Shown here piece by piece: positions 3,370 through 43,135 of a DNA stretch of 64,000 nt. The stretch is from Mobula hypostoma (lineage: Eukaryota): assembly GCF_963921235.1 (NCBI RefSeq), contig NC_086109.1:12462001-12526000 (forward strand), in the 5' to 3' direction. The notes under the pieces were generated by a model that worked only from the letters and a program-made list of their open reading frames with translations, ran no database searches and was not told the DNA's origin. Position 1 is the stretch's first letter. Each line of letters opens with the position of its first letter. The translations under genes and the position numbers were made by a program.

Positions 3370-3417
3370 TCACTTTACCTTATGGACCAGTCTGTGAGGA
3401 TCTGATTCATTGTGTCT
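3370..3417 (-). CDS. Receptor gene B/C, terminal exon: short cytoplasmic tail RHNESDPHRLVHKVK*, no ITIM
   Basis: Acceptor ttgccttttacag| at 3418-3419, phase 0, matching the TM exon. Stop TGA at 3370-3372; the same AAG-TGA ending is present in the paralog at 42411-42461. Confidence 0.75.
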   Translation of the reverse strand, partial: RHNESDPHRLVHKVK

Positions 3418-3665
3418 CTGTAAAAGGCAAAGGTCAAATCATCAGATTCATTGACACTGGGAACTCTGCTTTAGAGTTGTGTCTGGAGTCCAATATATTC
3501 ACATCAAGCATTCTGCACACATACAGTGTGTCAACATCTTGACAATCTCATCTGCAGATAGCTTTGGATTGACCATTGGATAAGGAAAATGAAATGTGTT
3601 TAAATGTCTTTCCTCAAATGATGAGTATGTTTGAAAGCAAATTCCACTGATGTCCATAAACCTAC

Positions 3666-3756
3666 CTTAATTTGTCTTGTGAACCATGAGACTGAAATAG
3701 TGCAGGTCAGCAGCAGAGCGAAGAGCAGCCAACGACCAACCTTCCATATCATGAAA
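3666..3756 (-). CDS. Receptor gene B/C, transmembrane exon FMIWKVGRWLLFALLLTCTISVSWFTRQIK (basic K/R at the N-terminal end of the TM)
   Basis: 91 nt between acceptor cccctttgcag| and donor |gtaggt; phase 2 to 0; hydrophobic. A paralogous 91-nt exon lies at 42717-42807. Confidence 0.85.
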
Positions 3757-4061
3757 CTGCAAAGGGGAAGAGATACAGAACTGATGAGACAAAACGAGAT
3801 GGCTTTGTATTTGAAACATTAACCTTCTGTTCCCTCTGTAACATTTGTGGTGTGGAGTGAGGTAAATAAAGAGAGTCAGAGGAGTTCAGCTAGAAGGCTA
3901 CACTAGTATTGACTGAACAGCAGGATTCGGGAGGGTTAACAACCTGTGATCGTCAGTAACAGACCTAATCACTGTGACTTGGTCATGTACAAATGAGTTC
4001 TCTGAATTAAGAAGTCGTAGGTGAAAATGGATTTAGGAAAAATAATGAAGTGTAGAGGTGC

Positions 4062-4101
4062 CTTTATGATACTGAAATGTCACTGGAGAAAGTGGACACA
4101 G
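4062..4101 (-). pseudogene. Relic Ser/Thr stalk exon (AVSTFSSDISVS*) with an in-frame TAA
   Basis: Acceptor ttccttacag|CTGTGTCCACTT matches 43096-43135. 40 nt if a GC donor is used; phase 1 to 2; TAA at 4064-4066. Confidence 0.45.
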
Positions 4102-6883
4102 CTGTAAGGAACATGTCACACAGTACACGATCGTTTTTTCATTACCACCATCAGAGAGGAGGTAGAAAAGCATGAAGAGACACACTCAATATTTTAGGAA
4201 CAGATTATTCCCCTCTACCACCAGATTCCGGAAGTCACAATAAACCAACCCATGAATACTACCTCAGTATTTTTGCTTTCTTTTTGTACTACTTATGAAT
4301 ATATATTTCTTATTGTAATTTATAGTTTTTGTGTTGCACTGTACTACTGCCACTAAACAACACATTTCATGACATATGTCAGTGATATTAAACCTGATTC
4401 TGATTCTGTGAGGAAGACACAAATAGAGAACATGTAGGTAGATATGAAAGATAATGAAAGATGCATGACGGAATATCGAACTGAGAAAAACAATCATGAG
4501 GGTGATCAAAAAATGTCACTCCCTGACTGCAGTGGGCAAAGCAAAATTGAGTTCAACGGTTTCTAAAGGACTCACTCACAACAGAAGATCTAAAATCCCG
4601 TTAAGAGCCTTTGTAAATTGAAGAAGCAATGGGGTAAATCAATCAGGGCAATGAAAATGACCACAATAAAATGTAATTATGATGATAAGATAGTAGGAAC
4701 CAGGTAGGAATAAAAGCAAATTATCTCAAGACAAGACAATGGCAACATTTTCAATGTGGTCATTCATTGATTCTATTGTGGTTATTGGAATTACTGAGTA
4801 TCCCTGCATGAAAACAAATCTCAGGGATGTATATGGTGATATATATGTACTGTCAGGTTTGAAATCTTGTCTACGATTCATCCAGTTCAATTACTTCTCT
4901 TCTTTAGCAGAGAACCGAAACTGAACACAACACTCCAAGTGTCATCTCATCAATTGTCTTGTACAACTGAAACATCACATCCCAACTTCTGTACACTGAC
5001 TGATGCCAAATGCCTTCTTCGCTACCCTTTTGAACTCTGACTACACTTTCAAGGAACCAAGTACCTGAATCCCAAGATCCCACTGTCATTTAACACTTTT
5101 CAAGGCTGACCAATCACCGTGAAAGTCTTACTTGATTTGACTTTTGAAAATGCAAAAATTTGCACATATCTAAATTAAATTCCACTTGATATTCCTCAGC
5201 TCAAATACCAGGCTGATAAAGATCCAGTGTAATTCTTCAAAATCGTGTGCAGGTCAGTGGGACTAGGCAGAAAATGGTTCGGCACAGCTGAGAAGGGCCA
5301 AAAGGCCTGTTTTGTGCTGTAGTTTTTCTATTGTTTCTATGGTTTCCTATTCACTGTCTCAAAAATTGTCTGAGTGTCATCTACAAATGAATATTTTTTT
5401 TCTGCAATTACTGTTGTTGAGACAGTGGTCAACTCTGCAAGTTGCTACCTTATTGCTTATTGCTCTACCTGCAATCCTTGAGTCAGTAAAAATCAGTGAA
5501 TATTACAAGGGGAAAAAGCATCCTGGGGTTTGACAAACAAACAAAACTCATCCTCACACCATGGGATGAGGTTAGTGAAGGAGTAGTCATGGAAAACACT
5601 GCATGGCTACTCTTTAAGTGCAGCAAATGATTCTACTTTCCTAAGAATAAACATTATAAGAAACTAGACTTGCTTTCCGTGGAGAATGAGGTTAAGAGTG
5701 GATATGACTGAGGGATGCAAAATTATGAGATGTACAGGTTGGATAGGCAACAGCAAACTTCCCCATTCTCAGAGGTGAATAAAACTAGATGACATAGATT
5801 TAGAAGGGATTTGAATGGATTGTTTTTACCCAGAGAGTGGTGGAAACAGAGTCACAGTCAGTGTTTGGTGAAGTGTCTGAATGAGGTCTTAAGTTAGATC
5901 TCCACAGAAGGCATTGGGCCATGTGCTGGAAGATAGGGTTTGTTGCACAGAATTGTGCAAACGTCTTAAGCACATGTAAAATAATTCTGTAAAGTGAAGA
6001 TGCTCTCAGAAATAATGAAATGAAAAGTCTCTATGTATCAAATATATGCTATATAGAGCAGCAAATAGTAAAAAAAAATAAATCAAATCAATATTGGCTT
6101 TAAAACTGGATCAAATCTGTTAGGTACGCAGTCACACAATTTTATAAGAAAGTTGGCTGGAAGGTTGTTTCAAGCACCTATTACACAACACCATGATATG
6201 AACTCTGAGCCTTAAAGTTCAAAGTAGATTTATTGTCAAAGGACATAAATGTCAGCATACACAATTGAGATTCTTTTTTATTGTGGATGCACTTAAAATA
6301 TCCATAGATTAATAACCAGAACAGAATTAATGAAAAACTACCCAAGTAATGCATTCAACCAGAGTATAGAAGACAACAAACTGTGCAATTTGAAAAAGAA
6401 ATAATAAATAAATAATAAATATCGAGAACATGAATTGAAGAGTCCTTGAAAGTTATTACATTGGTTGTGGGAAAATTTCAATGATGTGGCAAGTGAAGAT
6501 ATTGCCTGGCCTGTTGAATTCCTTCAGCATTTTATGTGTGTTGATGAGGCAATGAAGTTCATTGAAGCTTTCCCCTTTAGATGATTAATAAACACTACAA
6601 TTATCTACTTCTAAAATATGAACTAATATCAACTTTGAAGTCTAAGTTATTACAAAGTATTTAGAGAGATTTATTTATTTATCTTGGAGTCTTGGGGTTA
6701 AAACATGTAGGAGAGTGTTGGTTCTACCACTGGTTGTAGAACTGAAAACAATTCTCACAGGCATTCTATACAAGTAAAACTGTAACTTCTCCCTTAATTA
6801 TCTCTCATATGGGAACAGGACCAATCATAGTGCCAGCAATAAGAACATCGTACCATTAAGCAGAACTAGATCAAGAGGTTTAC

Positions 6884-6929
6884 CTTACAGTTGATACTGT
6901 CGTAAATGTTTCACATGAATATTCACGTC
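6884..6929 (-). CDS. Receptor gene B/C, stalk exon (G)REYSCETFTTVSTV(S)
   Basis: Acceptor tctttccttgcctcaacag| and donor AAG|gtaaac; 46 nt; phase 1 to 2, which bridges the C2 exon (ends phase 1) and the TM exon (starts phase 2). Confidence 0.72.
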
Positions 6930-7334
6930 CTGTTGAGGCAAGGAAAGATAATTCAGTCTCATGTGCTTTGCAAATGCAGCCAAGCAAGAGTACATGGTTG
7001 ACAGGTGGAAACTCTTTCCTTGAATAAAGGGTTGCTTGGTTACATGGAGGTCAGTAATTTCTGTTTCCTGTGCAAATGCGAACACCCATGTTCCTGGGGA
7101 AGTTATGGGGCTTGGATCGTCGGGATCACAAACTCTATTTAATTGGAAGTGAAAGTTCCAGCCAGGCAAATGACAACTACCAGCTCTGGGAGATCTGTTG
7201 TTGGGGTCGCAACATTCACCAGAGGGATGAATACATCTCTGCACTGAGTGTATGTGGAGATATTGGACCAAGTTCAGTTGTTGATACGACAGGGTAATGC
7301 TTCTTTTCTCAATGAAAAGACAACTCCTGGTATA

Positions 7335-7550
7335 ATGTAAAATGCGGGAGGAATTCAACAGTTCAGACAGCGTCTACGTAAAGAATAAACAGTTAACATT
7401 TCAGGCCAAGATCTTTCTGATGAAGGGTATTGGCCTGAAACTTTGACTGTTTATTCCTTTGCGTAGATGCTGCCTGACCAGCTGAGTTCTTACAGCATTT
7501 TGTAAACGTTGATCTTGTCTACAGCATCTACAGAATCTCTTGTGTTCCTG
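7335..7550. repeat. Inverted pair of Penelope-derived short repeats with a degenerate hammerhead core
   Basis: AAGAATAAACAGTTAACATTTCAGGCCAAG (7381-7410) is the inverse of CTGATGAAGGGTATTGGCCTGAAACTTTGACTGTTTATTC (7417-7456). Confidence 0.65.
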
Positions 7551-8460
7551 TTCTAATAACGTCATTGAACATCAGAGAGTTATACAGTATGGGAACAGGC
7601 CCTTTAGCTCAACTCATTCACTCTGATGAGTTTGTTTAACTCATCTCGTCTCACTTGCCTATATTAAGCTCATATCTCTTTTCCAGAAATGCTTTAAAGT
7701 CATTTTTATGTTATCCGCCTCTACCAATTCATTCAGTAATTTGTTCCAGATAACCCCCCAATCTCTGTGTAAAAATACTGTCCCTTATATCCCTTTTATA
7801 TACAACATTGAGCAGTAAAACACAGTACAGACCCTTCAGCCGATGATGTCACAGCCTTAAACCTACTCCACGATCAATCTAACCTTTCTTTCTACACAGC
7901 ACACAACCATCCATGTGCTAATCTAAGAGTTCCTTAAATATACCTGATATATTTAGCAGCATCATGATGAATCTCCTTTAAAACCTCTAAAGTTGCCGCA
8001 TTCTTTTTATAATGAGGTGACCAGTACTAAACACTATACTCCAAGTGTGGACTAACCAGAGTTTTATACAGCCCTAGCATTACCTTGTGACTCCTGACTT
8101 CAATACTTCGATTAATGAAGGCCAACATAGCAGGTGCCTACTTCACCATCCTATCAACTTGTGTGTCAACTTCAAAAGATATTTGGTTTTCGACCCCAAT
8201 ATCTTGCTATTAATCTTGTATTTTGCCTTAAGATTTCCTCTTACCTAACGTATACCTTCACACTTTTCCAGATAGAATTCCATCTGCCTCTTCAGAGACC
8301 AGTTCTGCACTCTGTCTATCTCCATAAGACGACAAAGACCATAGAGTTAGGCCTTCAACCCATTGAGTCTGCTCAGCCATTTTATCATAGTTGATCCATT
8401 TCCTTCTCAACATTCTCCTTCCTTCTCCCCATCAACTTTCACATTCTGACTAATCAAGAA

Positions 8461-9672
8461 TGTTATGGAGTGCTCCTGCAGGACTGGACCCAGGTGCGGA
8501 GGAATGGCAGGATGCCCAGGATGAGACGGAACCAAGAGGTAAGATGTTGGAATCAGAACCTCGGAGGAGCGACTGAGTAAAACCATGAGGTAATTCATCC
8601 TCTCTGACACAATGGCCACCCCAAGGCCCCAACTGATTATCCTCTTTAAATAATCATAGACTGAGGGAATTATGAGCCAGCCACAATTAACTTGACAAAG
8701 TCAAACCGAAAACACAAGGGCTTATCAACTCTAGTTAAGGCACTGATTAGCAAACACAGCTGCTTAAACACACCAGAAGCTGAATGCACTACAGCACGCA
8801 GCAGGGCTCAAGACAGTTCCTCCCCTCCTAAGGCTGGCACCTGACTGACTAGGGAGCTCTCGAGGCAGGTCTGAAAACACAAGGGGGACCTGGAGCTTGA
8901 GGCAGCGCTGGAGAATCCAGAACAGATTCGGAGCTTTCGAGGCAGGTCTGAAAAAACACGACAGAACGGGAGCTCAAGGCATAGCATTTGACTTGGAACC
9001 ATAGCACTTGACTTGGATGCACAGCATGTGACTTGGAAACACAGCGTTTAACTCAGGAAAAAAGCCTAAGATGGGAGACCTTATGAAACTTGTTGACCCA
9101 GATAGCTGTGGAAAAAATCTTGAACACAGACCGGAGAAGCTCAGAACCTCCATTGGGTCCATACAATGGGAGTCATTCTGTCATGGTGCACACCCTGAGG
9201 GCTGGATCCAGGTGTAGAGAAACAGCAGGATCCCCAGGATGAGATGCAAGGTAAGACAAGGGAATCAAAGCCTCAGAAAAGCGATGAGTAACACCATGAG
9301 GTAATTCATCCTCTCTGACATAATGACCACCCCTGAGGCAGCAACTGAGATTCCTCCCTAAATAATCATAGACTGAGGAAAACATAAGCCAGCCACAATT
9401 AACCTGACAAGTCAAACCGAAAACACAAGGGCTTATCAAGACCCTGATGAAGGGTGTCGGCCTGAAATGTCGACTGCACCTCTTCCTAGAGATGCTGCTT
9501 GGCCTGCTGCGTTCACCAGCAACTTTGATGTGTGTTGCTTGAATTTCCAGCATCTGTAGAATTCCTGTTGTTTAGGGCTTATCAACTCTAGTTAAGGCAC
9601 TGATTAGCAAATACAGCTGCTTAAACACCCCAGAAGGTCAGCGCTCTATGGAAAGCTACAAGGCACATGACA
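8461..9672 (-). mobile_element. Miniature non-autonomous LTR retroelement (TRIM-like)
   Basis: Direct repeats 8461-8815 and 9179-9672 with TGT...ACA ends; 5-bp TSD AAGAA at 8456-8460 and 9673-9677; minus-strand polypurine tract AGGAGGGGAGGAAC abutting the 3' LTR; internal region only 363 bp with an MDPME... start remnant. Confidence 0.8.
9440..9573 (+). mobile_element. Penelope-derived short retroelement inserted in the LTR; hammerhead-like core CTGATGA-AGGGTGTCGGCCT-GAAAT-GTC
   Basis: Flanked by a 12-bp TSD AGGGCTTATCAA (9428-9439 and 9574-9585); absent from the sister LTR. Confidence 0.75.
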
Positions 9673-11396
9673 AAGAACCTATGAACCACTGCCTTAAATG
9701 CACCCAGTGACCTGACCTCCACAGCCGCCCATGGCAAAGAATTCCAGTCTCACTGCCCTCCGGCTAAAGAAATTCCTCTTTATCTCTGTTCTAAATGGAC
9801 ATTCTTCTCTTTTGAGGATGTGCCCTCTGGTCCTCGACTCCCTCACCAAAGGAACATGCTCTTCCCATCCACTCTATCTAGGCCTTTGAACATTTGATCG
9901 GTTTCAATAAGATGCCCCCTTATTCTTCTAAATTCCAGTGAGTAGAGGCCCAGAGCTTTCAGTTGCTGCTCATATGATAACCCTTTCATTCTCAGAAACA
10001 TTCTTGTGAACTTCATTTGAACCCTCTCCAAAGTCAACACATTTTAGATAATTGGCCTAGAAATGCTCACCATAGTCCCAGTGAGGCCTCAACACTGCCT
10101 TACACAGCCTTAGCATTACATCCTTACTTTTACAATGCCTATAAAAAGTATTCAACCCCCTTGGAAGTTCAAGGTTTTATTGTTTTACAATATTGAATCA
10201 CAGTGGATTTAATGTATAAATGCAAACATGCTGAACAACGCTTCCACTTCTTCAGTCAAGTCCCTTATAAAAATCACAAAGGACAGAGGTTCCTGAACAG
10301 AACAAGCCTCCATTAATCAGAGAATTGAGATCAAGAGTCACGAGATAACTGTGTAATACCACTGGTCACCATCTCCTGGCAGAATACATTATCTACCAGC
10401 ACCCTCTGACCTCTGTGGGCAAACCAGTTTCAATTGTCAGAGTGTCTCAAATGAAGAGGCATAGTAGCAAGATTAGGATTGGGTAATTTAAAATTAGGTG
10501 CATAGGAACTTCTTCACAGTCCTTGGAATTCTCCACCTGGAAGGTTGTGAAAGTGGAGTGGTAGAGATATTTAAACAGAAAGTAGATATTTTTGATATAG
10601 TTCAGCAAATGGAGAAGTGGGAAAGGGCATAGAGGAGCAGGGACGGCCAGGTATAGGTCAGCCAGGATTATATTGAATAATGGAGTAGACTTCAGAGACT
10701 AAACAGCCTGCTGCGGCCATCCTTCCTGAGTTCTTGCACTAACTGCAGGTGGTTTCCACTGTTTCTTTAGTCTCTACAATTCTCTCTATTTTCCACGAAA
10801 CAAACCACTGGCAACTATTTATAGATCCAGAAGGAGCGAGTTTGAGTATTTGCTCTTTTTCAAGGATGGAACAATCTCAGTCATCAACCAGAAACATCAG
10901 CTGCTTAGACACAAAGCCACCATCGTCAGCAAGAACTGGCTGCAGACAGGAAGTACTCTGGTGAAAGACTCAGTTCTCAGCTATTGAATATGGCATTCGA
11001 TTCTCTGCAAGAATTGTCACAGCGGAGACAGAATAGTCCAGAAATGCCTGAATGCAGCCTAAAGAACATAACAGATTAACACTTCAACCCACTAACCCAC
11101 CCCTCCACAACACGCACCACCACTACATTATCATTTCATGTCACCCACCTTAGGTACAAACATTATTATGCCTAGTGTCACTTTATGGACATACACAGTC
11201 ACTACATACAAACAATCTTATGTATTTATAATTATTTTGTTTATTTATTGTTGTGTTCTATATCATATTGTTTTTTTGTGCTGTATTGGACCCTTACACT
11301 TGTGTACTAGAAATGACTTTAAGCAATCTTGAATCTTGAAAACGGTACATGATACTCAATCAATCATCCTGATGATTCGCACCCTCCACCACTTAC

Positions 11397-11708
11397 CAGT
11401 GCCAGTGATTTGAATCACAAAACTGCAATTGCCTTCCCTGTTGTAGATGGACACGTTCACTATTTCACTAGACTTTGCTCCACAAGTATTCGAGGCTGTG
11501 CAGTAATATTGATGGTGTTGGTAGTTGAAGGATTGACAATGTAGATCCAGTTTACTGGTGACAGAGATCACAGATGATGTGTTTTCATACCATGTGTATT
11601 GAATGGGAAGGGATCCCTGGACAGACTCACAGGACACTGACACGGAGCCCTCAACACACGAGACATTTGCAGGAGACAGAAATTGAAGCACAGGAACAGA
11701 CACCGGTT
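11397..11708 (-). CDS. Receptor gene B/C, C2-type Ig domain exon (membrane-proximal)
   Basis: 312 nt, phase 1-1, acceptor tctttcccacag| and donor |gtaagt. VSCESVQGSLPIQYTWY...YYCTASN motif; open frame. Confidence 0.9.
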
Positions 11709-13059
11709 CTGTGGGAAAGAATCAGTGAACATCAGAAAATCAATAAAGATTTCAGCAGCTCTGCATCTCAGCCAGGGCCAGCAGGTGGGTGTCTCACCTC
11801 TAAATCCACCTGTGTGTCTGCATCCTCCCAGATGCCTGAACTGCCACATCTGCCATTATCCCAAAACACAGCAAGACTCTGGATCAGGACAGCAGTGATG
11901 ATACTGAGAATGTGATGTGTCAGTGTGAAAATCAGGGTGCAATCTCTCTCAGCAACAAGGAGACAGTCTCCAGTGGAGTTTTTAAAAAAATCAATGCAAA
12001 TATTGTTTTAAGGTGAGAGGTGGGCAATTTAAAGGAGATTTGTGAGACAAGTTCTTTAGCTACAATGAGCGTGGTGACTGTTCTGTCAGGCAAGAAGGCG
12101 GAACAGGTATAACAACAATATTTAGAATGCATTTAGACTAACCCACAAAAAGTTTGGCACAGGTGTAATTATGGACATTTGCAGGCAGATGGAATTAGCT
12201 TAGACTGACATCATAAAATCATAGAACTATAAGACATAGGAGTAGAATTAGGCTATTTGGCCTATTGAGTTTGCACCACCATTCAATAATGTTGATATAT
12301 TTTCCCTCTCACCCCCACTCTGCTGCCTTCTCCCTGAAATCTTTGACACACTTACTGATCAAGAACCTATTAACTGCCACTTTGAGGATACCCAATAACT
12401 TGTCTTCCACAGCCTTCTGTGTCAATAAATTCCACAGATTCACCATCCTCTGGCAAAAGAAATTCATCCAAAAGGAATGTCCTTCTGTTGGCTTTCCCCT
12501 AGTCTCGACTTCTCCACTGCTGGAAACATGCTTCTCACATCTACTCTATCTAACCAGTCAATATACTATAGGTTCAATGAGATCCCATCTCATTCTTCTA
12601 AATTCTAGTGCGTAAAGCCTCAGTGCCATCCATATGTTAACCCTTTCATTCCAGGGAACATGGTCAGTGGAGCACATGATGGCCAAAGGCATCCTCAGTA
12701 TCATCACTTCTGTGCTGGCTGTTCCATGTTCAATCTTCTTCTGTAGTTCCATTTCTGCATTTTCCACATGGGAATGGTCAGGCAGGTCAGCAGGTACTAC
12801 AGGTGGGGACTTGGAGCTCCTTGACTGGTATGGAGGGAGAGAGAAAGAGAGAGATAGGGGCAGTGGGGCTGGAGAGGGTGTGACTGATCCCTGAGGTGAG
12901 ATGGGGATTGGGTTGCCCTGCTCCAGGGGGACTGAGCGGAGTCTGTTGAGCCTCAGCCTAACGGAGCCTCAGAATATTGGTGCTGCCCTGGGTCTTCCCA
13001 TGGAAAATATGGATCAGACATTTCAATGGAGATATAATGTCAATCAATGAGAAACCTAC

Positions 13060-13380
13060 CATCAGACACGTGTAGATGCACATCAAACACTGGATGATTG
13101 CCAGATGTTGTAATTCCACATCTGTAAAGTCCTGTATCTTGAGAGACGAGATTCTCCATAGTAACAGTAAATATTCCCTGGGTTGTGTTATCTCTGATTG
13201 CCATTTTTCCATACTGCTCATTTGTCCCATTTGTATCCACTAACGATGTGCATTGGTGATCCCACATGCGGCACCAATACTTTGTGTGTGAACGGTACAT
13301 TGGTGCATAGTGACAATCAATTGTGACCGTTCTTCCCACAACTCCTCTTACTTTATCTTCTGCCCATAAAGCACCTGAAA
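13060..13380 (-). CDS. Receptor gene B/C, V-type Ig domain exon, CD300/pIgR-like
   Basis: 321 nt, phase 1-1, donor GATG|gtaggt. TIDCHY...KYWCRMWDHQC...DTGLYRC, with the extra C-X6-C pair typical of CD300/pIgR V domains. Confidence 0.92.
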
Positions 13381-15469
13381 CTGAGGGAGAAGTTCTTCAG
13401 AAAATGGACAGGTAAAATTAAATTTACACAGACTGCATGCAGTTTGGGAAGACAACAGCATCGTCCCTCAACACGAGCTCACAGCTCTTCACAACTCATG
13501 ATTTTTATTTGATTGGAGTCATCATTATCACTGCCCACTAATGTCTCAGTCTGTTTCCACATTTCTGAGTCAATAGATAACTGATCCAGTCCCATTCCAG
13601 GCAGGTGAGCCTGAGGTCAGTGGTGGGTAAATTGTGTAACAATAGACCACCTGAACTTGCAAAGGGAAGCTCTGATTTTGGATGGTCAACCTGATTTTGT
13701 GTGTGGGAAATAATCTCTCAAAAAAAAATTGTCTTGACTTTTTTGTGAAGAGATGATCAAAGGAACTGTTGAGAACAGGGCAATAGAGTTTAGCACATGA
13801 GTTTAGCAAGGCTTATGACAAGACCCTGCATAGTAGACTGATGTGTAATGTGAGATCACATGGTAAGCTAGTTGGATGGATACTGAAGAGGCTTGGTGAA
13901 AATAATCACTTTGTGGTTGTTGGTCTACTGACAACATCTGACTTTATCACCAGTGGGGTGCCATCAAGATCAGTGCTGTCGTTTGCCAACTAAAGTTTTT
14001 TGTCATCTGCATTAATAATTTGGAATGAAAATGTAGGTGACGTGATTAATAAGTTGCCAATGACAGAGTAGTGCGGTGGACAATGGAAAGATCTAAGCTT
14101 ACAATGGGACCTGGAAAATGAACCAGGGTTCAGCCCCATTACTCTGCACTAGCATGACTCCCCCACCTGAGCCCGTCCCGTCTGCCTGCATTTGACCTGT
14201 CTCCCTCTCTTCTCATTTCTACAATCAGGTGGAAGGTGCAGGAGTCTTGGGTCCCACACCGCTGGGTTTGCCAGCAATTGTTGCCCTTAAGCCACCGTGC
14301 TCCAGGATTGGCTTCACTCGCCGCAGCACTGAACTGACTCCACAGCTGTGGACTCACTTTCAGAGACTCTGCCTCTCATGTTCCATGTATTATTTGTTTA
14401 CATATTGTTATGATTTGCGCGACTCATCATCTTTTGTTTGTCTGTCAGTCTTTGCTCTGTGTGTCTTGTCATGAATTCTACTGTGTTAATTTGTTTTGTG
14501 TGTATCTGCAAGAAAATGAATCTCTCAGTTGTTTGTGATATAGGTACTTTGACAATAAATTTACTTTGAACTTTGAACTAGGAAAGTGGCCAATGAAATG
14601 GCTGATGGAATTGAACTCAGGCAGTGTGGAGTGATGCACTTTGGGAAATTAAACAAGGGCACAACTTACACTGTAGGGAACGAGGTGTGCAATGACAGTG
14701 GTCCCTGAAAGTGGCAACACAGGTGGACTAAGTGGTGAACAAGTCATACGATCTGCTTGCCTTCATTGGATGGGGCATTAAGTACAGCTGGGATGGCATG
14801 TTACAGCCATAAAGGACATTGATAAGATCTCATCTTGACTACTCTGTGCAGTTCCAGAGGAAGAGTGTGATTAAATTCAAGAGGGTGACAGAAAACATTC
14901 ACAAAGATGCTGCTGGGACTGGAGGGTTTGGGTTATGGATAGGCTGGGACTGATTTCCCTGAAGTGAGGGCAGCTGAGGGGTGACCTTATAGAGGTTCAC
15001 AAATTAAGAGGGGCAAAAGTATGGTAGCATTCCTTATCCTAGGGTAAGAGAGTCGAAAACTAGAGAGTCTAGACTGAAGGTCAGAGGGCCTGGAGGGGCA
15101 GTGTTTTCCACACAGAGCAGTGTGCACATGGAAAAGGCTGTCAGGGGAAGTGCTAGAGGTGGGTACAAATTTAAAATACAATTGGAAAAGTTCATGGACA
15201 GGAAAGCTTGAGAAGCATACCGACCAAATACAGGGAAATACAGGGAGAAGCTCAGGAAGAGACTATGGACTTGGGCTGAAGCTCCTGTTTCCAAAACCTG
15301 TAACTCTATATGACTTTGCTGCATCTTCTCTGAACTAGACCACACTTTTGAAAGGTTAAATTCAGAATTCTATTTCACTGCACAGGTGTGATAGCTTTTG
15401 GAATCACAGCCAATCAGCTTACACTTCAACTGAAATGTTTGAAGTTCAAAGTACATTTATTATCAAAGT

Positions 15470-15920
15470 GGTGGCATCCGTTAGTCTCGCAAGACCATGG
15501 ATCTGCGCCTGGAAAGTCTAGCTTCAGTCTGTGTTAGAGCAGCATCTGTTGTGGCTATAGAGGCCCACATGGGAGTGACAGTCTCCGCTGCAGCGACTGC
15601 ACTTGAAGGCGCTGTCCTCCAGTGTTGTCTTGGTGCTGTTTCTCCAACAAGTGCGCTTTTCTCAGCAGCAAGCCTCAGCTTCTCTTCTCCTCTTTTTAGA
15701 CCACTGCATAGTTCCAGCCTCCAGTGAGAGCGATCGCTTGCGATGTCCTCCCACCTCTTGACGTTCATTTTTAGTGACTTCATGTCTCTCTAGCAAACGT
15801 CTTTGAAACGAAGATGGGGCCGCCCTTGTCCTCTATTGCTGGAGGCCAGTTCCCCGCACAGCAGGTCTTTCGGGATCCTCTTGTCTGACATGCGGTGTAC
15901 GTGGCCCAGCCAGCGGAGAC
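15470..15920 (-). mobile_element. RTE-clade LINE 3' fragment
   Basis: RRLRWLGHV.RM...RIPKDLL.GEL...GRP.LRFKD followed by DCHSHVGLYSH; typical RTE ORF end. Confidence 0.8.
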
Positions 15921-17574
15921 GGCGTTGTTATTATCGAAGTATGTATACTATATACAACATTGAGATTGTCTCCTTACAGGAACCCACAAAACAAAGAAAC
16001 CAAATAGAACCCATTAAAAAAACACTGTCAAACATCCAATATGCAGAAATAAAAATCATGCGAACCATAAAAGTAAGCAAATTACGTTCGGAACTGAAAT
16101 TCGCAAAAATGGGTCACAGACACAAAGCCAGTCATCACTGCAGCCGATTCAGGAGCCCGTTAATTGCAAGCTGCAGCCTTAGTTCAGCACAGAGACGAGT
16201 AAACCCTGTGGAGCAGCAAGCTGAACACCGGCCCATTCCTTGCCTACAACAGGCATCCCTATAGTGTTTCCCATGGATTTTGAAGGTTTATTATTCTATT
16301 CTCAATCACGAAATGCAGCAGCCTTGATCATTTCAGTGCATAGACTCAAATAGAAGGTGTGGGCTCCCTTCTCATATCTCTGCCCCACTAAAGGAAACGT
16401 TCTCTCTAAATCCACTCTAATTAGGCCTTTCAATATTCGATTGGATTCAATGAGATTCCCCTCAAAGTCAAAGTCAAAGTAGAGATTTATTATCAGAGTG
16501 CGTACATCTCACCACACACAACCCTGAGATTCTTTTGCTGCGGGCATACCTAGCAAATTTACAGTACAGTAACTGTAACCAGAATCAATGGACAACAAAC
16601 GGTGCAAACTTTGACTTTGACCTTGTTATCCCCAAACCTGCCATCCAAGTGATTAACATACACCATAAAAAGTAGCAGTCCTAACACCAGCCCCTGCGGA
16701 ACTCTACAAGTCACTGACAGGCAAACAAAAAGGCACCATTTTGTTCACATTCTTTGCCTCCTGCCAGTCACCCAATCTTTTATCCATGCTAGAATCTTTC
16801 TAGTAATACCTGGCTTCTTATCTTGTTTAGCAGGCTCATATGTGGCACCTAGTCAAAGGCTTTCTGAAAATCCAAGTCAACAATATCCACTCTCTTTTAT
16901 CTGTCTTGCCTATTATTTCCTCAAAGAATTCCCACAGATTTTTCAGGCAAGATTTCCCCATAATGAAACCAAATGTCATCATGCACCTTCAAGTACCCTG
17001 AAATCCTATCCTTCATAATGAACTCCAGCACCTTCCCAACCACTGACATCAGGCTAACTGACGTCAATTCCCTCTCATTTGCCTCCCTCTCTTCTGAAAG
17101 AGTGGAGTAACATTTCCAATATTCCAGTCCCACAGAACCAACCCAGAATCAGATCACTACTAATGCCTCCACAATTTCTTCAGCTTCCTCTTTAAGAACC
17201 CTGGGGTGTAGACCATCTGAGTCAGGTGATTTATATACCTACCTCCACTCCTCTCAGCTTCCCAAGCACCTTCTCCTTAGCAAGAGCAACTACACTCACT
17301 CCTTGACATTGCCCCTTGACATTGCTGAATTTCTGTCATACTGCTTGTGTCTTCCTCAGTGACCAATAATATAAAATGCTTATTAAGTGATTCCTCCATT
17401 TCTTTGTACCTCATTTCTATGTCTCCAGCTTCATTATCCAGTGATCTAATATCCACTCTTGCTTCTCTCTTACACTTTATATATCTGAAAATCTTCTAGT
17501 CTCCTCTTTTATATTATTGGCTATTTTCCCTTTATATTTAATCTTTTCTCTCCTTTTGGCTTTTCTTGTTACAT

Positions 17575-18000
17575 TCTTCAACAAACTCACTCGTAAGGCC
17601 AGTGATGTTGTGGGGATGGAACTGGACTCTCTGACGGTGGTGTCTGAAAAGAGGATGCTGTCTAAGTTGCATGCCATCTTGGACAATGTCTCCCATCCAC
17701 TACATAATGTACTGGGTGGGCACAGGAGTACATTCAGCCAGAGACTCATTCCACCGAGATGCAACACAGAGCATCATAGGAAGTCATTCCTGCCTGTGGC
17801 CATCAAACTTTACAACTCCTCCCTTGGAGGGTCAGACACCCCGAGCCAATAGGCTGGTTCTGGACTTATTTCATAATTTACTGGCATAATTTACATATTA
17901 CTATTTAACTATTCATGGTTTTATTACTATTTATTATTTATGGTGCAACTGTAATGAAAACCAATTTCCCCCGGGATCAATAAAGTATGACTATGACTAT
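17575..18000 (+). mobile_element. Rex1/Babar-like LINE 3' end
   Basis: KLHAILDNVSHPLH...RCNTEHHRKSFLPVAIKLYN, then a 3' UTR and a (TATGAC)n tail. Confidence 0.75.
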
Positions 18001-18388
18001 GTTGGTTTTTTAAAGTTCCCCAATTCTCTAACTTCCCACAAATTCTTGCTATATTATATGTCCTTCCTTTTCCTTTTATGACAGTGCCACTGTCTCATGA
18101 TTCAACACTCATTCTAGTATCTTCAGTGCAAAAACCAGAAGTATGAATGGAATGCCACCAATTTGTCTGGAGCTGCAAGTCCAGCTATGTTTAAGATGTT
18201 CCACATTTTCCAGGAGAAGTCACAGACTTAACTGTTGACTACACTTTGATCTACCCCATGGAGGCTGCAATGTGTAGCTTCTACGAATGCAAAGAATTTC
18301 CTTACCCTCAGTAGAAGTATAAGAACAGCAGTAACAGAGTAACAAAAAGAAATCTTTAAATGTATCCTTCCTTGAAAGGAGAACTTAC

Positions 18389-18709
18389 TGGTGCCATTAA
18401 TTCTTGTCACATATCCGCAGATCTCTCTGCTGTTGAAGATTGTCACATTTAGCATTCCGCTGGATTTTATTCCAAGCCTATTTGAGGCTTTGCAGTAATA
18501 TTGATGGGCTTGGAGGTCTAAGGATTGACAAGGTAGAACCAGTTCATTGGTGTCTGAGATCATTTGATCCCCAGATGAGGTTTGTTCATACCATGAGTAC
18601 TGAATGGGAAGGGATCCCTGGAGAGATTCACAGGACACTAACACGGAGCCACCGAGATGGGAGACATTTGCTGGTGACAGATTTCGAAGCACAGGGACAG
18701 ACACAGTTT
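18389..18709 (-). CDS. Receptor gene B/C, C2-type Ig domain exon
   Basis: 321 nt, phase 1-1, acceptor ccttcccacag| and donor |gtaagt. VSCESLQGSLPIQYSWY...YYCKASN; paralog of 11397-11708. Confidence 0.9.
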
Positions 18710-18769
18710 CTGTGGGAAGGAATTGAACAATCAGACACTGAATGAACATCTGAAAATCAAACTCTCTTC

Positions 18770-19319
18770 TGCCACTGTATTAGGTACACCTGTTCACCTG
18801 CTTGTTAATGCAAATATCTAATTAGTCTATCATCTGGCAGCAACACAGTACATAAAAACATGTAGACATACTCAAAAGATTCAGCTGTTGTTTAGACCAA
18901 ACATCAGAATGGGGAAGAAATGTGATCTTAGTGACTTTGACCATAGAATGATAGCTGGTGCCAGACAGGGAGGTTTGAGTATCTCAGGAACTGTTGAATT
19001 CCAGGAATATTCATACATAGTCTGCAGACTTTACAGAGAATGGTGCAAAAAGCAAAAAGTATCCAGTGAGCAGCAATTCTGTGAGCAAAAATGACTGGTC
19101 AATGGGAGAGGTCAGAGGAGAATGGCCAGGTAGTTTCAGGCTGACAGAAAGATGACAGAAATTCAAATAAACATGTGCTATGACAGTTATGCAGAGGAGC
19201 ATCTGGGCACACAACCCACAGTTAAGCTTAAAGGTAATGGGCCACAGCAGCAGAAGACCATGAACATATTCCTTGGCCAATTTATTAGTTATAGGAGGTA
19301 CCTAATAAAGTGGCCACTG
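18770..19319 (+). mobile_element. Internally deleted Tc1-like element (transposase N-terminus only)
   Basis: MGKKCDLSDFDHRMIAGARQGGLSIS...; terminal repeat GTACCTAATAAAGTGGCCACTG ends at 19319. Related partial copies lie near 20620-21072, 32790-33230, 40345-40425 and 56660-57575. Confidence 0.8.
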
Positions 19320-19409
19320 AGTATTTAAAGACAGCAGCTTGTGAGATATCTGTCACATGTTTGATGGCTATCAGGAAAAAACTACCCGCTGTATAAAGGG
19401 AAACATTTC

Positions 19410-20340
19410 AGAATCAGAATCAGGTTTATTATCACTGGCATGTGTTGTGAAATTTGTTAACTTAGCAGAAGCATCTAGATGCAATACATAATATAGAAGA
19501 AGAAGGAAAAAAATAATAAAATAATAATAAGTAAGTAAATCAATTACAGTACACATATTGAATAGGTTAAAAATTGTGCATCAAACAGAAATAATATATA
19601 TTAAAAAAGTGTTGTAGTGTTTATGGGTTCCATGTCTATTTAGGAATCAGGTGGCAGAGGGGAAGAAGCTGTACCTGAATCGCTGATGTGTGCCTTCAGG
19701 CTTCTGTACTTCCTACCTGATGGTAACAGTGAGAAAAGGGCATGCCCTGGATGCTGGAGGTCCTTAATATTGGATGCTGCCTTTCTGAGACACCACTGCT
19801 TGAAGATGTCCTGGGTATTTGTAAGCTAGTATCCAAGATGGAGACAACTAAATTTACAGCCCTCTGCAGTTTCTTTCGGTCCTGTGCCATAGCCCGCCCC
19901 CCGCCCCCCCGATACCAGACAGTGATGCAACCTGTCAGAATGCTCTCCACTGTACATCTATAGAAGTTTTTGAGTGTATATGTTGACGTACCAAATCTCT
20001 TCAAACTCCTAATGAAGTATAGTCGCTGTCTTGCCTTCTTTATAATTGCATCAATATGTTGGGACCAGGTTAGGTATCTGAGATCTTCACACCCAGGATC
20101 CTGAAATTGCTCACTCTCTCCACTTCTGATCCCTCTTTGAGGATTGGTATGTGTTCTTGAAGTCCACAATCCCTTCCTGAATTCCGCAATCAGCTCTTTC
20201 GTCTTACTGACGTCATATGCAAGTTCGTTGGTGCGAAACCACTCCACTCGTTGGCAAATCTCACTCCCATATGCCTTCTCATCTCCATCTGAGATTCTAC
20301 CAACAATGGCTGTATCATCAGCAAAATTATAGATGGTATT
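19410..20340 (-). mobile_element. Rex1/Babar-like LINE, RT C-terminal fragment with 3' UTR
   Basis: FADDTAIVGRISDGDE...SKTKELI...ARQRLYFIRSLKRFG...FYRCTVESILTGCITVWY; ends in a GATTCT-type tail near 19410. Confidence 0.85.
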
Positions 20341-20618
20341 TGACAATGATATTAATACAGAGATAGTGAGGAATGGACAGTGTCTGGACAAAGATCTTTT
20401 AAACTGTGCTGAGGCAGAGTGGGAGGAGAAGGAGAAGGAGATTGTTGTTCTTCAGACATGTCAGGAGTTGGACATTTCTCCATTCAACAGGCTTCACCCT
20501 GGGATTAGCACATCATTGCTCTCCAAGAGTTTTCATGTTCTGACCTTTCCCAGAGGAAACATGGATTTATTTCATTGAAGGCACAAAGTTACTCACTGAG
20601 AAACCTACCATCAGATAC
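20340..20618 (-). pseudogene. Remnant of a deleted V exon (last about 11 nt plus donor) and its downstream intron
   Basis: GAGAAACCTACCATCAGATAC near 20598-20618 and the adjacent about 260 bp are paralogous to 21185-21460, but the V coding body is replaced by Tc1-element sequence. Confidence 0.65.
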
Positions 20619-21449
20619 AGTGCCTATGGTCAAGAGATTCAGTTGTTGTTCAGGACAAATATCAGATGGGGAGGAAATGAGATTTTAGTGACTTTGACCA
20701 TGCAATGATAGTTGGAGTCAGTCGGGGCGGTTTGAATACCTCAGAACCTGTTGATGTCCTGGGACTTGCATGTTTAACAGTCTTCAGAATGGTGTGAAAA
20801 ACAAGAAATATCTAGTGAGCAGCAATTCCGTGAACAATAATGCCTTGATAATGAGAGAGGTCAGAGGAGAATGGCCAGACTGGTTCATGCTGACAGAAAG
20901 ATGACAGAAATTCAAATAACCTCATTTTATGACAGTGGTGTGCAGAAGAGCATCTGAACACACAAGACATCAAAGCTTGAAGTGAATGAATCACAGCAGC
21001 AGAAGACCATGAACAGACGCTCAGTGGCCACTTTATTTGGTATAAGAGTTACCAAATGAGGTGCCCACTGAGTGTTTAAAGGCAGCAACTTGTGAGATAC
21101 CCATCACATGTTTAGTGGCTTTCAGGCGGAAATGAAATTGCGACTGGGTTCAGTGACCTGCCATAGAGAGGGAAACATGTGGCACTGATATTAATGCAGA
21201 AATAGTGAGAGATGGACAGAGTCAGGACAAAGGTCCTGTAATCTGTGCAGAGGCTGAGCAGGAGGAGGAGGAGATTGCTGTTCTTCAAACACATCCACAA
21301 GATGGGCATTTCTCCACTGTACAAGCTTAACCCTGGGATCAGCACATCGTCACTCCCCAGGACATCTAATACACTGACCCTTCCCAGGGGAAACATGGAT
21401 AAGACATTTATTTTACTGAAGGCACAAAGTCAATCACTGAGAAACCTAC

Positions 21450-21770
21450 CATCAGATACTTGTAAATGTACATTAAATATCGGATCATGACCTGGTGTTG
21501 AAATCCCACAGCTGTACCATCCTGTATCTCCAGAGTGAAGATCCTCCACAGTAACAGTAAATATTTCCCATTCTGGGTTATCTGTGATTGATGCTCGTCC
21601 ACTCCGTCTGTGTTGCCCATTTGTTTCCATTAAAACTGAACATTGATGAGTCCATCCATGACACCAATACTTTGTGCGTGAGTGGTACTTTGCTTCATAG
21701 TGACAATGGATTGTAATCGCTCTTCCCACAACTCCTCTTACATATTTCTCTGCCCACAATGCACCTGAAA
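21450..21770 (-). CDS. Receptor gene B/C, N-terminal V-type Ig domain exon, CD300/pIgR-like
   Basis: 321 nt, phase 1-1. VSGALWAEKYVRGVVGRAITIHCHY...KYWCHGWTHQC...DTGWYSC; open frame with canonical splice sites. Confidence 0.92.
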
Positions 21771-23132
21771 CTGAGAGAGGCATTTTCAGATTTGAGGGGA
21801 AAGGAACAACTTAATGCAAACAAATAACTTTGAACATGATGGTAAAGCAGGTCCAGGTCATATCCGGCCTGTGGTCCATGACAGCACAGCCAGTGACTTT
21901 GGTTTGAAGTGCAGTCAGTGCTTTTACTGTGTCAGCACATTAAATTCCCACTGTAGAATCCTGAACAGAAACCCAGGGCTGAATTTCTAGTGCAGTATTG
22001 AAGGAGAGCCACAATGTAGTCTATCAATTACCTCAGACCATGTCACCCTTTCAAAGTACACTAAGTTCCCAGAGAACTCATTTGGGATGCTCCTGAGTGT
22101 GCGTCTCGGAATGCAGGGAACTCAGAAGTTGGAATGGGGATTGGTAGGACCATTTGAGATCATGTTTCAATTCTCTCCATGTCCTGACATCCTCCACTAA
22201 CAGACACGTTTATAAACTTCAGAAAGAAACCCATCATGATGTCTGAAACTGTGTCTTCTGGTTCTGATGGAAATTTTATCTTTTGTGTTTGTCAAGTGTT
22301 TCTATGTGCAGTTAGAAGGTGTGCAACAGTGGTCGTTACCACTTCCGTGTCTAGAAATCCAAGTGTGATTTCTATTTCTAAAAGGATACATTGGAAGTTT
22401 AAAGATAATTTGTTAGTTGTTTTGGAATTAAAAACCACATCAGTAATGATAAACATCAGCTACCAGAGTGTCAAAATCCCATCTGGATCAGAAAGGCCTT
22501 TAGAGGCAGAAATCTCTCATCCCTACACACCTTGGTTTACCTTTGACTCCAGATCTAGTAATGTTCATTACTAATTGCTCCACTGAAATGGCCCAGGAAA
22601 GATTGATTGAAAGGTAGTAACATCGATTGTCATAGTGATCCCTGCAGAGTGAGATCAGATTCCGTCAATGGTAGACGTGATGTTCTCGCTTAAAAGCCCC
22701 CAGAAAATTTCTCCACCTGGACGTATTCTCTCCCCACCTGGCTCCACGCGATTCCCCTTTTCTCCTTACCTGCTTTCCCACTCACTCATCAGCAAACTCC
22801 ACTCCTTTCCCTCCCCATTCCATTTGTCTGTCGTGCTTCACCCTTCCTCAGTCCCCGACAACCGAGTGGACCCAGTCTCACACCTCCCCCTCTCCTATAT
22901 ACACTATCTCCCTCTCCACTCACACTTGATGAGGGGTCTCGAACCAAACCGTTGACATTTTCCCCTCCCCTGACAGATGCTGCTTGAGCTGCTGAGCTCC
23001 TCCAGCAGCTCCTCTGAACTCCAGATTTCTGACATCTTTAGTGCCTACAGATATTCAAGTACTCTTCTGGAAACAATGTACAGCCCCAAGGAAACATTGA
23101 TTAAAGAATGTCCAGTGCTGGTTGTCACTCAC

Positions 23133-23172
23133 CAGGTAGAAAACCAATCAGAAGAATCAAAGTCCACATCAT
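23133..23172 (-). CDS. Receptor gene B/C, leader (signal peptide) exon MMWTLILLIGFLP
   Basis: ATGATG...CCTG|gtgagt, phase 1. Joined to the V exon it gives MMWTLILLIGFLPVSGALWA, a complete signal peptide. Confidence 0.85.
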
Positions 23173-24433: not shown

Positions 24434-27306
24434 GGAGCATTCGTAATAAGGTGGATGAATTGAAAGTGCAGATTGTTATTAATGATTATGATATAGTTGG
24501 GATCACAGAGACATGGCTCCAGGGTGACCAGGGATGGGAGCTCAACGTTCAGGGATATTCAATATTCAGGAGGGATAGACATGAAGGAAGGTGAGGTGGG
24601 GTGGCGTTGCTGGTTAAAGAAGAGATTAATGCAATAGAAAGGAAGGACATAAGCCGGGAAGATGTGGAATCGATATGGGTAGAGCTGCGTAACACTAAGG
24701 GGCAGAAGACGCTGGTGGGAGTTGTGTACAGGCCACCTAACAGTAGTAGTGAGGTCGGAGATGGTATTAAACAGGAAATTAGAAATGTGTGCAATAAAGG
24801 AACAGCAGTTATAATGGGTGACTTCAATCTACATGTAGACTGGGTGAACCAAATTGGTAAAGGTGCTGAAGAAGAGGATTTCTTGGAATGTATGCGGGAT
24901 GATTTTTTGAACCAACATGTCGAGGAACCGACTAGAGAGCAGGCTATTCTGGACTGGGTTTTGAGCAATGAGGAAAGGTTAATTAGCGATCTTGTCGTGA
25001 GAGGCCCCTTGGGTAAGAGTGACCATAATATGGTGGAATTCTTCATTAATATGGAGAGTGACATAGTTAATTCAGAAACAAAGGTTCTGAACTTAAAGAG
25101 GGGTAACTTTGAAGGTATGAGACGTGAATTAGCTAAGATAGACTGGCAAATGACACTTAAAGGATTGACGGTGGATATGCAATGGCAAGCATTTAAAGGT
25201 TGCATGGATGAACTACAACAATTGTTCATCCCAGTTTGGCAAAAGAATAAATCAAGGAAGGTAGTGCACCCGTGGCTGACAAGAGAAATTAGGGATAGTA
25301 TCAATTCCAAAGAAGTAGCATACAAATTAGCCAGAGAAAGTGGCTCACCTGAGGACTGGGAGAAATTCAGAGTTCAGCAGAGGAGGACAAAGGGCTTAAT
25401 TAGGAAGGGGAAAAAAGATTATGAGAGAAAACTGGCAGAGAACATAAAAACGGACTGTAAAAGCTTTTATAGATATGTAAAAAGGAAAAGACTGGTAAAG
25501 ACAAATGTAGGTCCCCTGCAGACAGAAACAGGTGAATTGATTATGGGGAGCAAGGACATGGCAGACCAATTGAATAATTACTTTGGTTCTGTCTTCACTA
25601 AGGAGGACATAAATAATCTTCCAGAAATAGTAAGGAACAGAGGGTCCAGTGAGATGGAGGAACTGAGTGAAATACATGTTAGTAGGGAAGTGGTGTTAGG
25701 TAAATTGAAGGGATTGAAGGCAGATAAATCCCCAGGGCCAGATGGTCTGCATCCTAGAGTGCTTAAGGAAGTAGCCCAAGAAATAGTGGATGCATTAGTG
25801 ATAATTTTTCAAAACTCGTTAGATTCTGGACTAGTTCCTGAGGATTGGAGGGTGGCTAATGTAACCCCACTTTTTAAAAAAGGAGGGAGAGAGAAACCGG
25901 GGAATTATAGACCGGTTAGCCTAACGTCGGTGGTGGGGAAACTGCTGGAGTCAGTTATCAAGGATGTGATAACAGCACATTTGGAAAGCGGTGAAATGAT
26001 CGGACAAAGTCAGCATGGATTTGTGAAAGGAAAATCATGTCTGATGAATCTCATAGAATTTTTTGAGGATGTAACTAGTAGAGTGGATAGGGGAGAACCA
26101 GTGGATGTGGTATATTTGGATTTTCAAAAGGCTTTTGACAAGGTCCCACACAGGAGATTAGTGTGCAAACTTAAAGCACACGGTATTGGGGGTAAGGTAT
26201 TGGTGTGGGTGGAGAATTGGTTAGCAGACAGGAAGCAAAGAGTGGGAATAAACGGGACCTTTTCAGAATGGCAGGCAGTGACTAGTGGGGTACCGCAAGG
26301 CTCAGTGCTGGGACCCCAGTTGTTTACAATATACATTAATGACTTGGACGAGGGAATTAAATGCAGCATCTCCAAGTTTGCGGATGACACGAAGCTGGGT
26401 GGCAGTGTTAGCAGTGAGGAGGATGCTAAGAGGATGCAGGGTGACTTGGATAGGTTGGGTGAGTGGGCAAATTCATGGCAGATGCAATTTAATGTGGATA
26501 AATGTGAAGTTATCCACTTTGGTGGCAAAAATAGGAAAACAGATTATTATCTGAATGGTGGCCGATTAGGAAAAGGGGAGGTGCAACGAGACCTGGGTGT
26601 CATTATACACCAGTCATTGAAAGTGGGCATGCAGGTACAGCAGGCGGTGAAAAAGGCGAATGGTATGCTGGCATTTATAGCGAGAGGATTCGAGTACAGG
26701 AGCAGGGAGGTACTACTGCAGTTGTACAAGGCCTTGGTGAGACCACACCTGGAGTATTGTGTGCAGTTTTGGTCCCCTAATCTGAGGAAAGACATCTTTG
26801 CCATAGAGGGAGTACAAAGAAGGTTCACCAGATTGATTCCTGGGATGGCAGGACTTTCATATGAAGAAAGGCTGGATGAACTGGGCTTGTACTCGTTGGA
26901 ATTTAGAAGATTGAGGGGGGATCTGATTGAAACGTATAAGATCCTAAAGGGATTGGACAGGCTAGATGCAGGAAGATTGTTCCTGACGTTGGGGAAGTCC
27001 AGAACGAGGGGTCACAGTTTGAGGATAGAGGGGAAGCCTTTTAGGACCGAGATTAGGAAAAACTTCTTCACACAGAGAGTGGTGAATCTGTGGAATTCTC
27101 TGCCACAGCAAACTGTTGAGGCCAGTTCACTGGCTATGTTTAAGAGGGAGTTAGATATGGCCCTTGTGGCTACAGGGGTCAGGGGGTATGGAGGGAAGGC
27201 TGGGGCGGGGTTCTGAGTTGGATGATCAGCCATGATCATAATAAATGGCGGTGCAGGCTCGAAGGGCCGAATGGCCTACTCCTGCACCTATTTTCTATGT
27301 TTCTAT
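24434..27306 (+). mobile_element. Young CR1-clade LINE (APE endonuclease plus RT), slightly 5'-truncated
   Basis: 871-aa open frame 24601-27216 with GDFN, YLDFQKAFDKV, GVPQGSVLGP and FADD motifs; in-frame TGA at 24592-24594; (TTTCTATG)n tail. Confidence 0.96.
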
Positions 27307-42410: not shown

Positions 42411-42461
42411 TCACTTTAACTCCTGGACCACCAGGCTGAAAGGATCAGATTCATCACGTCT
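42411..42461 (-). pseudogene. Gene A terminal exon, short tail RRDESDPFSLVVQELK*
   Basis: Acceptor ttgccttttgcag|; paralog of 3370-3417 with the same stop position. Confidence 0.7.
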
Positions 42462-42716
42462 CTGCAAAAGGCAATGGTCAACCCATCAGATTCTTCGACA
42501 ATGGGATCTCTGCTTTAGTTCACACGGTCACTCACAATGGAATTCTGTCTGAAGCAAGTATTCCATTCATTCTAAACACAAGAGACCATGTCAAAGCCAA
42601 GCTATATCATCTGCATAAAATTGAATTTGACCACAGGATAAGAAAGGATTCATATATTTAAAAGTTTTTCCTCAAATGATCAGTATATTTGATTCTGCTG
42701 ATTTCCTTAAGTCTAC

Positions 42717-43095: not shown

Positions 43096-43135
43096 GACAA
43101 TGATAAAGAAATAGAATTGAAGGAAGTGGACACTG
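43096..43135 (-). pseudogene. Gene A putative stalk exon AVSTSFNSISLS
   Basis: Acceptor ttccttacag|; phase 1 to 2 with either a GT donor (exon ends 43099) or a GC donor (exon ends 43096); donors are weak. Confidence 0.45.

Follow-up and report, generated by a model that had tools for sequence, protein, structure and literature searches.

A four-Ig-domain receptor gene of the MDIR5 type in the lesser devil ray, Mobula hypostoma

We describe here a locus on the minus strand of a 64,000-nucleotide stretch of the genome of the lesser devil ray, Mobula hypostoma (NCBI RefSeq assembly GCF_963921235.1, contig NC_086109.1, positions 12,462,001 to 12,526,000; the whole stretch is referred to as the window, and its own numbering is used throughout). 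With a probability that we would put at about 0.8, this locus is a single intact gene for a modular domain immune-type receptor (MDIR) of the MDIR5 type, the product being a type I membrane receptor with a charged transmembrane segment, presumably of the activating form and coupled to a partner chain. The gene and its product, which has four immunoglobulin (Ig) domains, are already in the public annotation, and the locus is an ordinary one for the MDIR family, which was described in skates in 2006. The public names, polymeric immunoglobulin receptor (pIgR)-like and Fc receptor-like protein 5 (FcRL5), are misleading: the locus belongs to neither of those families and is of the MDIR5 type. The value of the analysis is mainly one of annotation, in that these names are corrected; moreover, a model built by hand, tiny exons included, is found to agree both with the public model and with the receptor family published in 2006.

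Exons, public models and family

An earlier note on this DNA, made from the letters alone, had proposed eight exons with GT-AG sites that chain in frame without a stop, and this is confirmed. Eight minus-strand segments, each bounded by an AG acceptor and a GT donor (exon 1 begins with ATG, and exon 8 closes with TGA), join into an open reading frame (ORF) of 1500 nt encoding 499 aa, with phases 1,1,1,1,1,2,0 and zero internal stops; the gene spans about 19.8 kb of a window that contains no N and has about 41% G+C. All four Ig exons are phase 1-1, and the codons formed at the junctions (ATT for Ile, GAA for Glu, AAA for Lys) agree with the RefSeq proteins. The exons are as follows (here and below, a slash marks a splice junction).

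23133-23172, minus strand: exon 1 (coding part), ATG and 13 signal-peptide codons, MMWTLILLIGFLP, with the phase-1 donor CTG/GTGAGT; the same leader is found in RefSeq isoforms X1-X3 and in the paralogue P0194.
21450-21770, minus strand: exon 2, V1, a V domain of the CD300/pIgR type with the extra KYWC...C disulfide and N-terminal VSGALWAE; V-set at 1.4e-12, with matches to pIgR and CD300 chains.
18389-18709, minus strand: exon 3, the first of the C2-type domains, FcRL5/CD22-like, with four Cys and, at the C-terminal end, a hairpin to INGT; FcRL5 at 5.7e-26, in the ray C1-type clade.
13060-13380, minus strand: exon 4, V2, a dedicated internal V type (ISGALWAEDKVRG...), a cassette exon absent from RefSeq isoform X3; in the ray V2 clade, whose type is never found behind a leader.
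11397-11708, minus strand: exon 5, the second, membrane-proximal C2-type domain; from splice sites, Pfam, RefSeq mapping and the C2 tree.
6884-6929, minus strand: exon 6, stalk GREYSCETFTTVSTV, with a Cys conserved in the family; from RefSeq mapping and the family alignment.
3666-3756, minus strand: exon 7, transmembrane segment SFMIWKVGRWLLFALLLTCTISVSWFTRQIK, with an Arg kept in all elasmobranch short-tail forms; from the model helix 453-483 and the family alignment.
3370-3417, minus strand: exon 8, tail RHNESDPHRLVHKVK and stop, with an alternative donor AAG/GTAAAG after 3379 leading to a ninth exon outside the window; from RefSeq mapping and the family alignment.

When the V1 exon was searched against 1.84 billion representative proteins, it matched at 100% an entry (P0019) that is XP_062921369.1, 'Fc receptor-like protein 5 isoform X3' of M. 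hypostoma; isoforms X2 and X1 came from a further search and from a look-up of clusters. The RefSeq isoforms of the locus are X1 (XP_062921367.1, 528 aa) and X2 (XP_062921368.1, 515 aa), both named 'polymeric immunoglobulin receptor-like', and X3 (XP_062921369.1, 421 aa). The small exons of the earlier note are genuine: XP_062921368.1 and XP_062921369.1 map exactly to 23134-23172, 21451-21771, 18390-18710, 13061-13378, 11395-11709, 6886-6927, 3666-3758 and 3379-3417, and the stalk, transmembrane segment and tail align with those of ray and skate homologues.

The three RefSeq models come from this one locus and have identical exons 1-7 (with V2 left out of X3), and they differ from the eight-exon model in having a further terminal exon (EGREKETRHEHF...), which ends all of them. 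X1, which also has 3379-3417, is identical to the 499-aa protein at 497 of 499 residues, the mismatch arising because X1 takes the donor after 3379, where the eight-exon model reads on to a KVK-stop at 3370. In X2, exons 1-7 are followed directly by the terminal exon, the tail exon being skipped; in X3, the tail exon is included (3379-3417) and the V2 exon is skipped in frame, so that the first C2 is joined to the second C2. The terminal exon is absent from the window and must lie below position 1, since the copy used by RefSeq was not found in the window. There is, however, a 59%-identical copy of it at 29427-29522 on the minus strand (EGREKETRHEHFQS...), which has two in-frame stops and is directly followed by AATAAA, and because of these features the RefSeq terminal exon has the look of an intergenic repeat that provides a polyadenylation site.

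MDIRs are cited as a multigene family of skates, with activating and inhibitory members, related to CD300, TREM and pIgR (PMC3031540, in which reference 35 is the MDIR paper: Cannon et al., 2006, Immunogenetics 58:362). Matches of our searches include the 'Modular domain immune-type receptor' proteins 2, 3 and 5 of the clearnose skate (Raja/Rostroraja eglanteria), of which MDIR5 (ABC86800.1, 501 aa) is colinear with the devil ray protein from end to end (61.8% identity, residues 2-499 against 1-501). Closer colinear relatives are known from H. akajei (P0166, 77%) and M. birostris (P0169, 71%). The architecture proposed in the earlier note, leader-V-C2-V-C2-stalk-transmembrane segment-tail, is right: it is that of skate MDIR5 and also of 32 predicted proteins, from sharks, rays and a chimaera, that have the V-C2-V-C2 order in a retrieved set of 247 related proteins (their anchors being of Arg type, of a type with an immunoreceptor tyrosine-based inhibitory motif (ITIM), or unassigned). 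This order is a common form in the family. The modules run V1-type, C1-type, V2-type, C2-type, and each groups with the domains at the same position in other rays. This is in keeping with the MDIR family, whose ectodomains combine a varying number of modules from few Ig-domain subfamilies; and there is a multigene cluster of short-tailed forms with charged transmembrane segments and of ITIM-tailed forms (both kinds are in the window), with ectodomains common to activating and inhibitory forms.

The likeness to skate MDIR5 extends to details: 501 and 499 residues in a V-C2-V-C2 arrangement, SGALWA opening both V domains, an EYSCE stalk, the membrane segment WKVGRWLLF and a tyrosine-free tail of 21 aa. 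The skate belongs, however, to another order of batoids, its tail ends ...HELQ rather than ...HKVK, and the first V domain of MDIR5 groups with internal V domains and not with the first V domains of rays, so that MDIR5 is a putative orthologue.

Each of the two 321-nt exons, at 21450-21770 and 13060-13380, matches the Pfam V-set family with E of about 1e-12, and the exons at 18389-18709 and 11397-11708 are C2-type (Pfam Ig_2, Ig_3 and Ig_C17orf99). The V exons find pIgR domains and CD300 chains among solved structures (single CD300 domains at 1e-17 to 1e-18), with which they have the second KYWC...C disulfide in common, and the C2 exon finds FcRL5 best (5.7e-26 across three FcRL5 domains), followed by titin, CD22 and CAR. 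The AlphaFold (AF2) model, with a predicted local distance difference test score (pLDDT) of 80.8, has four Ig domains and a helix at 453-483; searched whole with Foldseek, it gave unspecific multi-Ig matches with pIgR on top, and an ESM Atlas look-up with the C2 exon returned generic Ig clusters only. Both C2-type domains have a second Cys pair (protein residues C181 and C218, invariant across 30 homologues), and each has an extra C-terminal beta hairpin that closes in INGT or ITGT. The further conserved Cys of the stalk (in EYSCE) may be free for an interchain bond.

Three other families were considered and rejected. The first V-type domain of pIgR and the V domain of the mammalian activating CD300 (CMRF35-like) receptors resemble those of the devil ray protein in the second disulfide, and the activating members of CD300 are, in addition, short-tailed with a charged residue in the membrane. 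But CD300 receptors have one V and no C2 domain, while pIgR has V-type domains only and a long sorting tail; the devil ray receptor alternates V with FcRL-like C2 domains. It is not a pIgR, as its second and fourth domains are C2-type, matching FcRL5 and not pIgR, and its tail has 21 residues. Nor is it of the CD300 family, for although the V domains match CD300 chains at about 1e-17, extra disulfide included, there are four Ig domains, two of them C2-type. Assignment to FcRL fails because FcRL5 is matched by the two C2 exons alone, which take turns with V domains, and because the tail is without tyrosine.

The second V domain

The earlier note had observed that V2 opens with SGALWA and had read this as the end of a signal peptide. 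The opening itself is confirmed, but SGALWA belongs to the V fold and linker and is no leftover of a signal peptide: in alignment, the counterpart of LWAE is the N-terminus of mature pIgR (D1), the AlphaFold model shows LWA as a beta strand in V1 and V2 alike, and a similar start is found in every internal V domain among the related proteins, including those of skate MDIR3 and MDIR5 (INNT/VSGALWAESE) and those in which V follows V. Signal cleavage probably takes place just before the motif. The puzzle of a V2 domain with a start resembling a signal peptide is in this way settled, as a feature of V exons across the family.

Of the two origins that the earlier note had allowed for V2, recruitment as an internal domain is supported. 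Profiles of the V1 type and of the V2 type were used to score all V domains in the related set. A leader precedes V1-type domains 85 times, while among 33 V2-type domains 27 come after a C2, four after a V, and none behind a real leader (in the remaining two cases, one model is cut in mid-domain and the other has a non-hydrophobic N-terminus). In domain trees (made by quick searches over about 106 columns, with support given only as the Shimodaira-Hasegawa-like approximate likelihood ratio test, SH-aLRT), the internal V domains of rays, those of the sawfish Pristis among them, come together in one clade (SH-aLRT 93, 88, 95) that stands apart from first V domains, and the first C2 domains of rays likewise form a clade (SH-aLRT 99). 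Skate internal V domains make up a clade of their own (SH-aLRT 97), which may or may not share one origin with those of rays. To judge from these comparisons, V2 recruitment was an old and family-wide event and not a local one.

The other origin was that two incomplete genes in tandem (a leader-V1-C2 gene without membrane exons, and a leaderless V2-C2-stalk-transmembrane segment-tail gene) have been wrongly joined by predictors. It can draw on the SGALWA start of V2, which in V1 follows the leader, on the fact that all the supporting ray models are predictions, and on a leader-like ORF at 16014-15978 (MGSIWFLCFVGS) with a GTAAGG donor. That ORF, however, lies in T-rich sequence and is rejected as a second leader, such ORFs being expected by chance at 0.86 per 5 kb per strand; the earlier note, too, had recognized no second leader, and we agree. 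In the whole 5-kb interval between V2 and the first C2 (13381-18388), nucleotide and peptide searches detected no copy of a leader, stalk, transmembrane or tail exon; there was no match to a family protein in it either, and the introns are without decayed Ig exons. The same C2-to-V junction (INGT/ISGALWAED, INNT/VSGALWAESE) recurs in dozens of models from at least 10 species and in skate MDIR3 and MDIR5, and isoform X3 links the first C2 to the second. With V2-type domains never behind a real leader, the two-gene origin is, as far as sequence goes, rejected, and we give it hardly any credence.

A single gene might instead yield mainly a V-C2-C2 product like X3, with V2 a mostly skipped or decaying cassette. 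The in-frame omission of V2 from X3 speaks for this, as does a V2-skipping isoform modelled also for a paralogue in M. birostris (P0185, P0249). But the V2 exon is intact, with every Ig hallmark and strong splice sites; V2 is the least diverged domain with respect to relatives (89% identity to the nearest, with an end branch of 0.054); and the four-domain order is, as noted above, common in the family. A three-domain main product therefore seems to us distinctly improbable. There is a slim chance, smaller again, that V2 is a regulated module, either skipped (giving V-C2-C2) or begun from an unseen internal first exon (giving a short V2-C2 form), which might be why its SGALWA start and conserved intron flanks have been kept; one MDIR gene would then provide several ectodomains on the same Arg-bearing anchor, which would pair with FcR-gamma.

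Under the preferred reading of one gene with four Ig domains, the phase 1-1 exons would allow a V-C2 pair to duplicate in frame, and the same phasing explains the in-frame skipping of V2 in X3. In a self-comparison of the two V-C2 units, similarity extends no further than 10-70 nt beyond the exons. Immediately past the V-exon donors, some 20 intron bases (gtaggtttctca.tga.tga) are near-identical in V1 (21420-21450), V2 (13030-13060) and a third, dead V exon of the window (43565-43593, minus strand; see below), and the acceptor regions (ctcag) at 21770-21780 and 13380-13390 are also near-identical; the rest of the introns are unrelated. Such flank identity could reflect gene conversion or conserved splicing signals. 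The rate of synonymous substitution (dS) is 0.42-0.48 for both the V pair and the C2 pair, which would fit duplication of the V and C2 exons together, though not decisively.

Membrane anchor, tail and signalling

Conservation from skate to devil ray covers GREYSCE in the stalk, WKVGRWLLF in the membrane segment (without variation among batoids) and a short tail of the pattern TR..K..ESDP.....VK, or LQ in place of VK, that ends there in a stop. From the conservation in the family of the short tail and its stop, it appears that ...KVK-stop is the usual family end, though it is not the one used in the RefSeq isoforms of M. hypostoma; the 3' end is the one point on which the earlier note needs correction, as the RefSeq models splice instead to an alternative ninth exon. 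The Lys and Arg that the note had placed at the outer end of the transmembrane segment are indeed there, at positions 5 and 8 of a hydrophobic stretch of 25 residues. Only batoids have the Lys; the Arg is conserved in sharks as well, right through their short-tail forms (W.V.RW.LF). Between the Arg and TRQIK there are 17 hydrophobic residues, too few for a span, so that the Arg would lie within the outer part of the membrane.

A basic residue in the membrane (WKVGRW) combined with a short, motif-less tail (21 residues, with no tyrosine) is what characterizes adaptor-coupled receptors, and the conserved Arg and tyrosine-free tail are our grounds for the activating reading. ITIM-tailed paralogues have near-identical ectodomains and uncharged membrane segments; with Arg-anchored short-tail forms, they make up a paired-receptor pattern. 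We suppose that the devil ray receptor, lacking a signalling motif of its own, would signal through a partner chain bearing an immunoreceptor tyrosine-based activation motif (ITAM) and, in the membrane, an acidic residue, and that this partner, of the FcR-gamma, CD3-zeta or DAP12 kind, would dock on the Arg. The receptor would in that case be the activating counterpart of the adjoining ITIM-tailed MDIR genes. Its ligand might be a lipid or polymeric Ig (these are guesses, made from CD300 and pIgR).

An Arg at such a depth is typical of mammalian partners of FcR-gamma (Fc-alpha-RI, GPVI, NKp46), and a split into charged and ITIM-bearing forms is the mark of paired receptors. FcR-gamma-coupled receptors in general (these three, LILRA and PIR-A) are like the devil ray protein in having an Arg in the helix, a few residues in from its outer end, and a motif-less short tail; they differ in having C2-only ectodomains and in being encoded in the leukocyte receptor complex, and homology with the devil ray receptor is here limited to the Ig fold. 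Whether the Arg couples to an ITAM adaptor is a question for the whole elasmobranch MDIR family and is not specific to this locus.

Several points weigh against the reading of one intact, activating gene. The KVK-stop is used by none of the three RefSeq isoforms. Constraint between the two V-C2 units is only moderate (the ratio of nonsynonymous to synonymous substitution, dN/dS, is about 0.6), and the evidence for the C2-to-V2 junction consists of predicted models and of skate database proteins, the latter presumably obtained as cloned cDNA. The 2006 MDIR paper reportedly placed MDIR5 not with the activating receptors but among the forms without typical activating or inhibitory motifs; it may have taken the Arg and Lys as lying outside the membrane. 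In a 2014 survey, FcR-gamma was not found in cartilaginous fish (PMC4016189).

The 2006 classification, the 2014 survey and the closeness of the basic residues to the outer boundary would all suit a single gene that is not activating, the Arg and Lys at the membrane boundary merely serving to anchor a product that is a non-signalling binder, a decoy, an adhesion molecule or shed. We consider this unlikely. With so few hydrophobic residues beyond it, the Arg should sit inside the outer leaflet, as it does at the same depth in Fc-alpha-RI, GPVI and NKp46, and it is invariant from sharks to rays in the short-tail forms while the ITIM-tailed paralogues are uncharged, in keeping with the paired-receptor pattern.

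Neighbouring elements in the window

Other elements were recognized in the window, as follows.

42411-43912, minus strand: a single-V copy with the same Arg-type anchor, comprising a V exon (43593-43912), a transmembrane exon (42717-42807, FMTWKVGRWLLF...) and a tail (42411-42461, ...SLVVQELK-stop).
57626-57931 and 62671-62724, minus strand: exons for an ITIM-type tail and an uncharged transmembrane segment (EENIVYADLHH, TYADIKFQSQP, CLLCYLKRKNR), from an inhibitory MDIR gene whose Ig exons lie past the window end.
25474-26268 and 48629-49445, plus strand: two copies of a transposon-like element, which match a part of protein P0140 (1930 aa) at about 42% identity across 199 aa and have an identical 17-aa ORF piece.

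The single-V copy is probably a pseudogene: a leader was sought for it and none was found, and its V exon has 320 nt against 321, one A being missing near codon 8 (which brings a stop into the expected frame), and a GC instead of a GT donor. Both transposon-like copies sit in stretches of strong GC skew, and a diverged piece of the same kind lies at 16644-17240, inside the C2-to-V2 intron.

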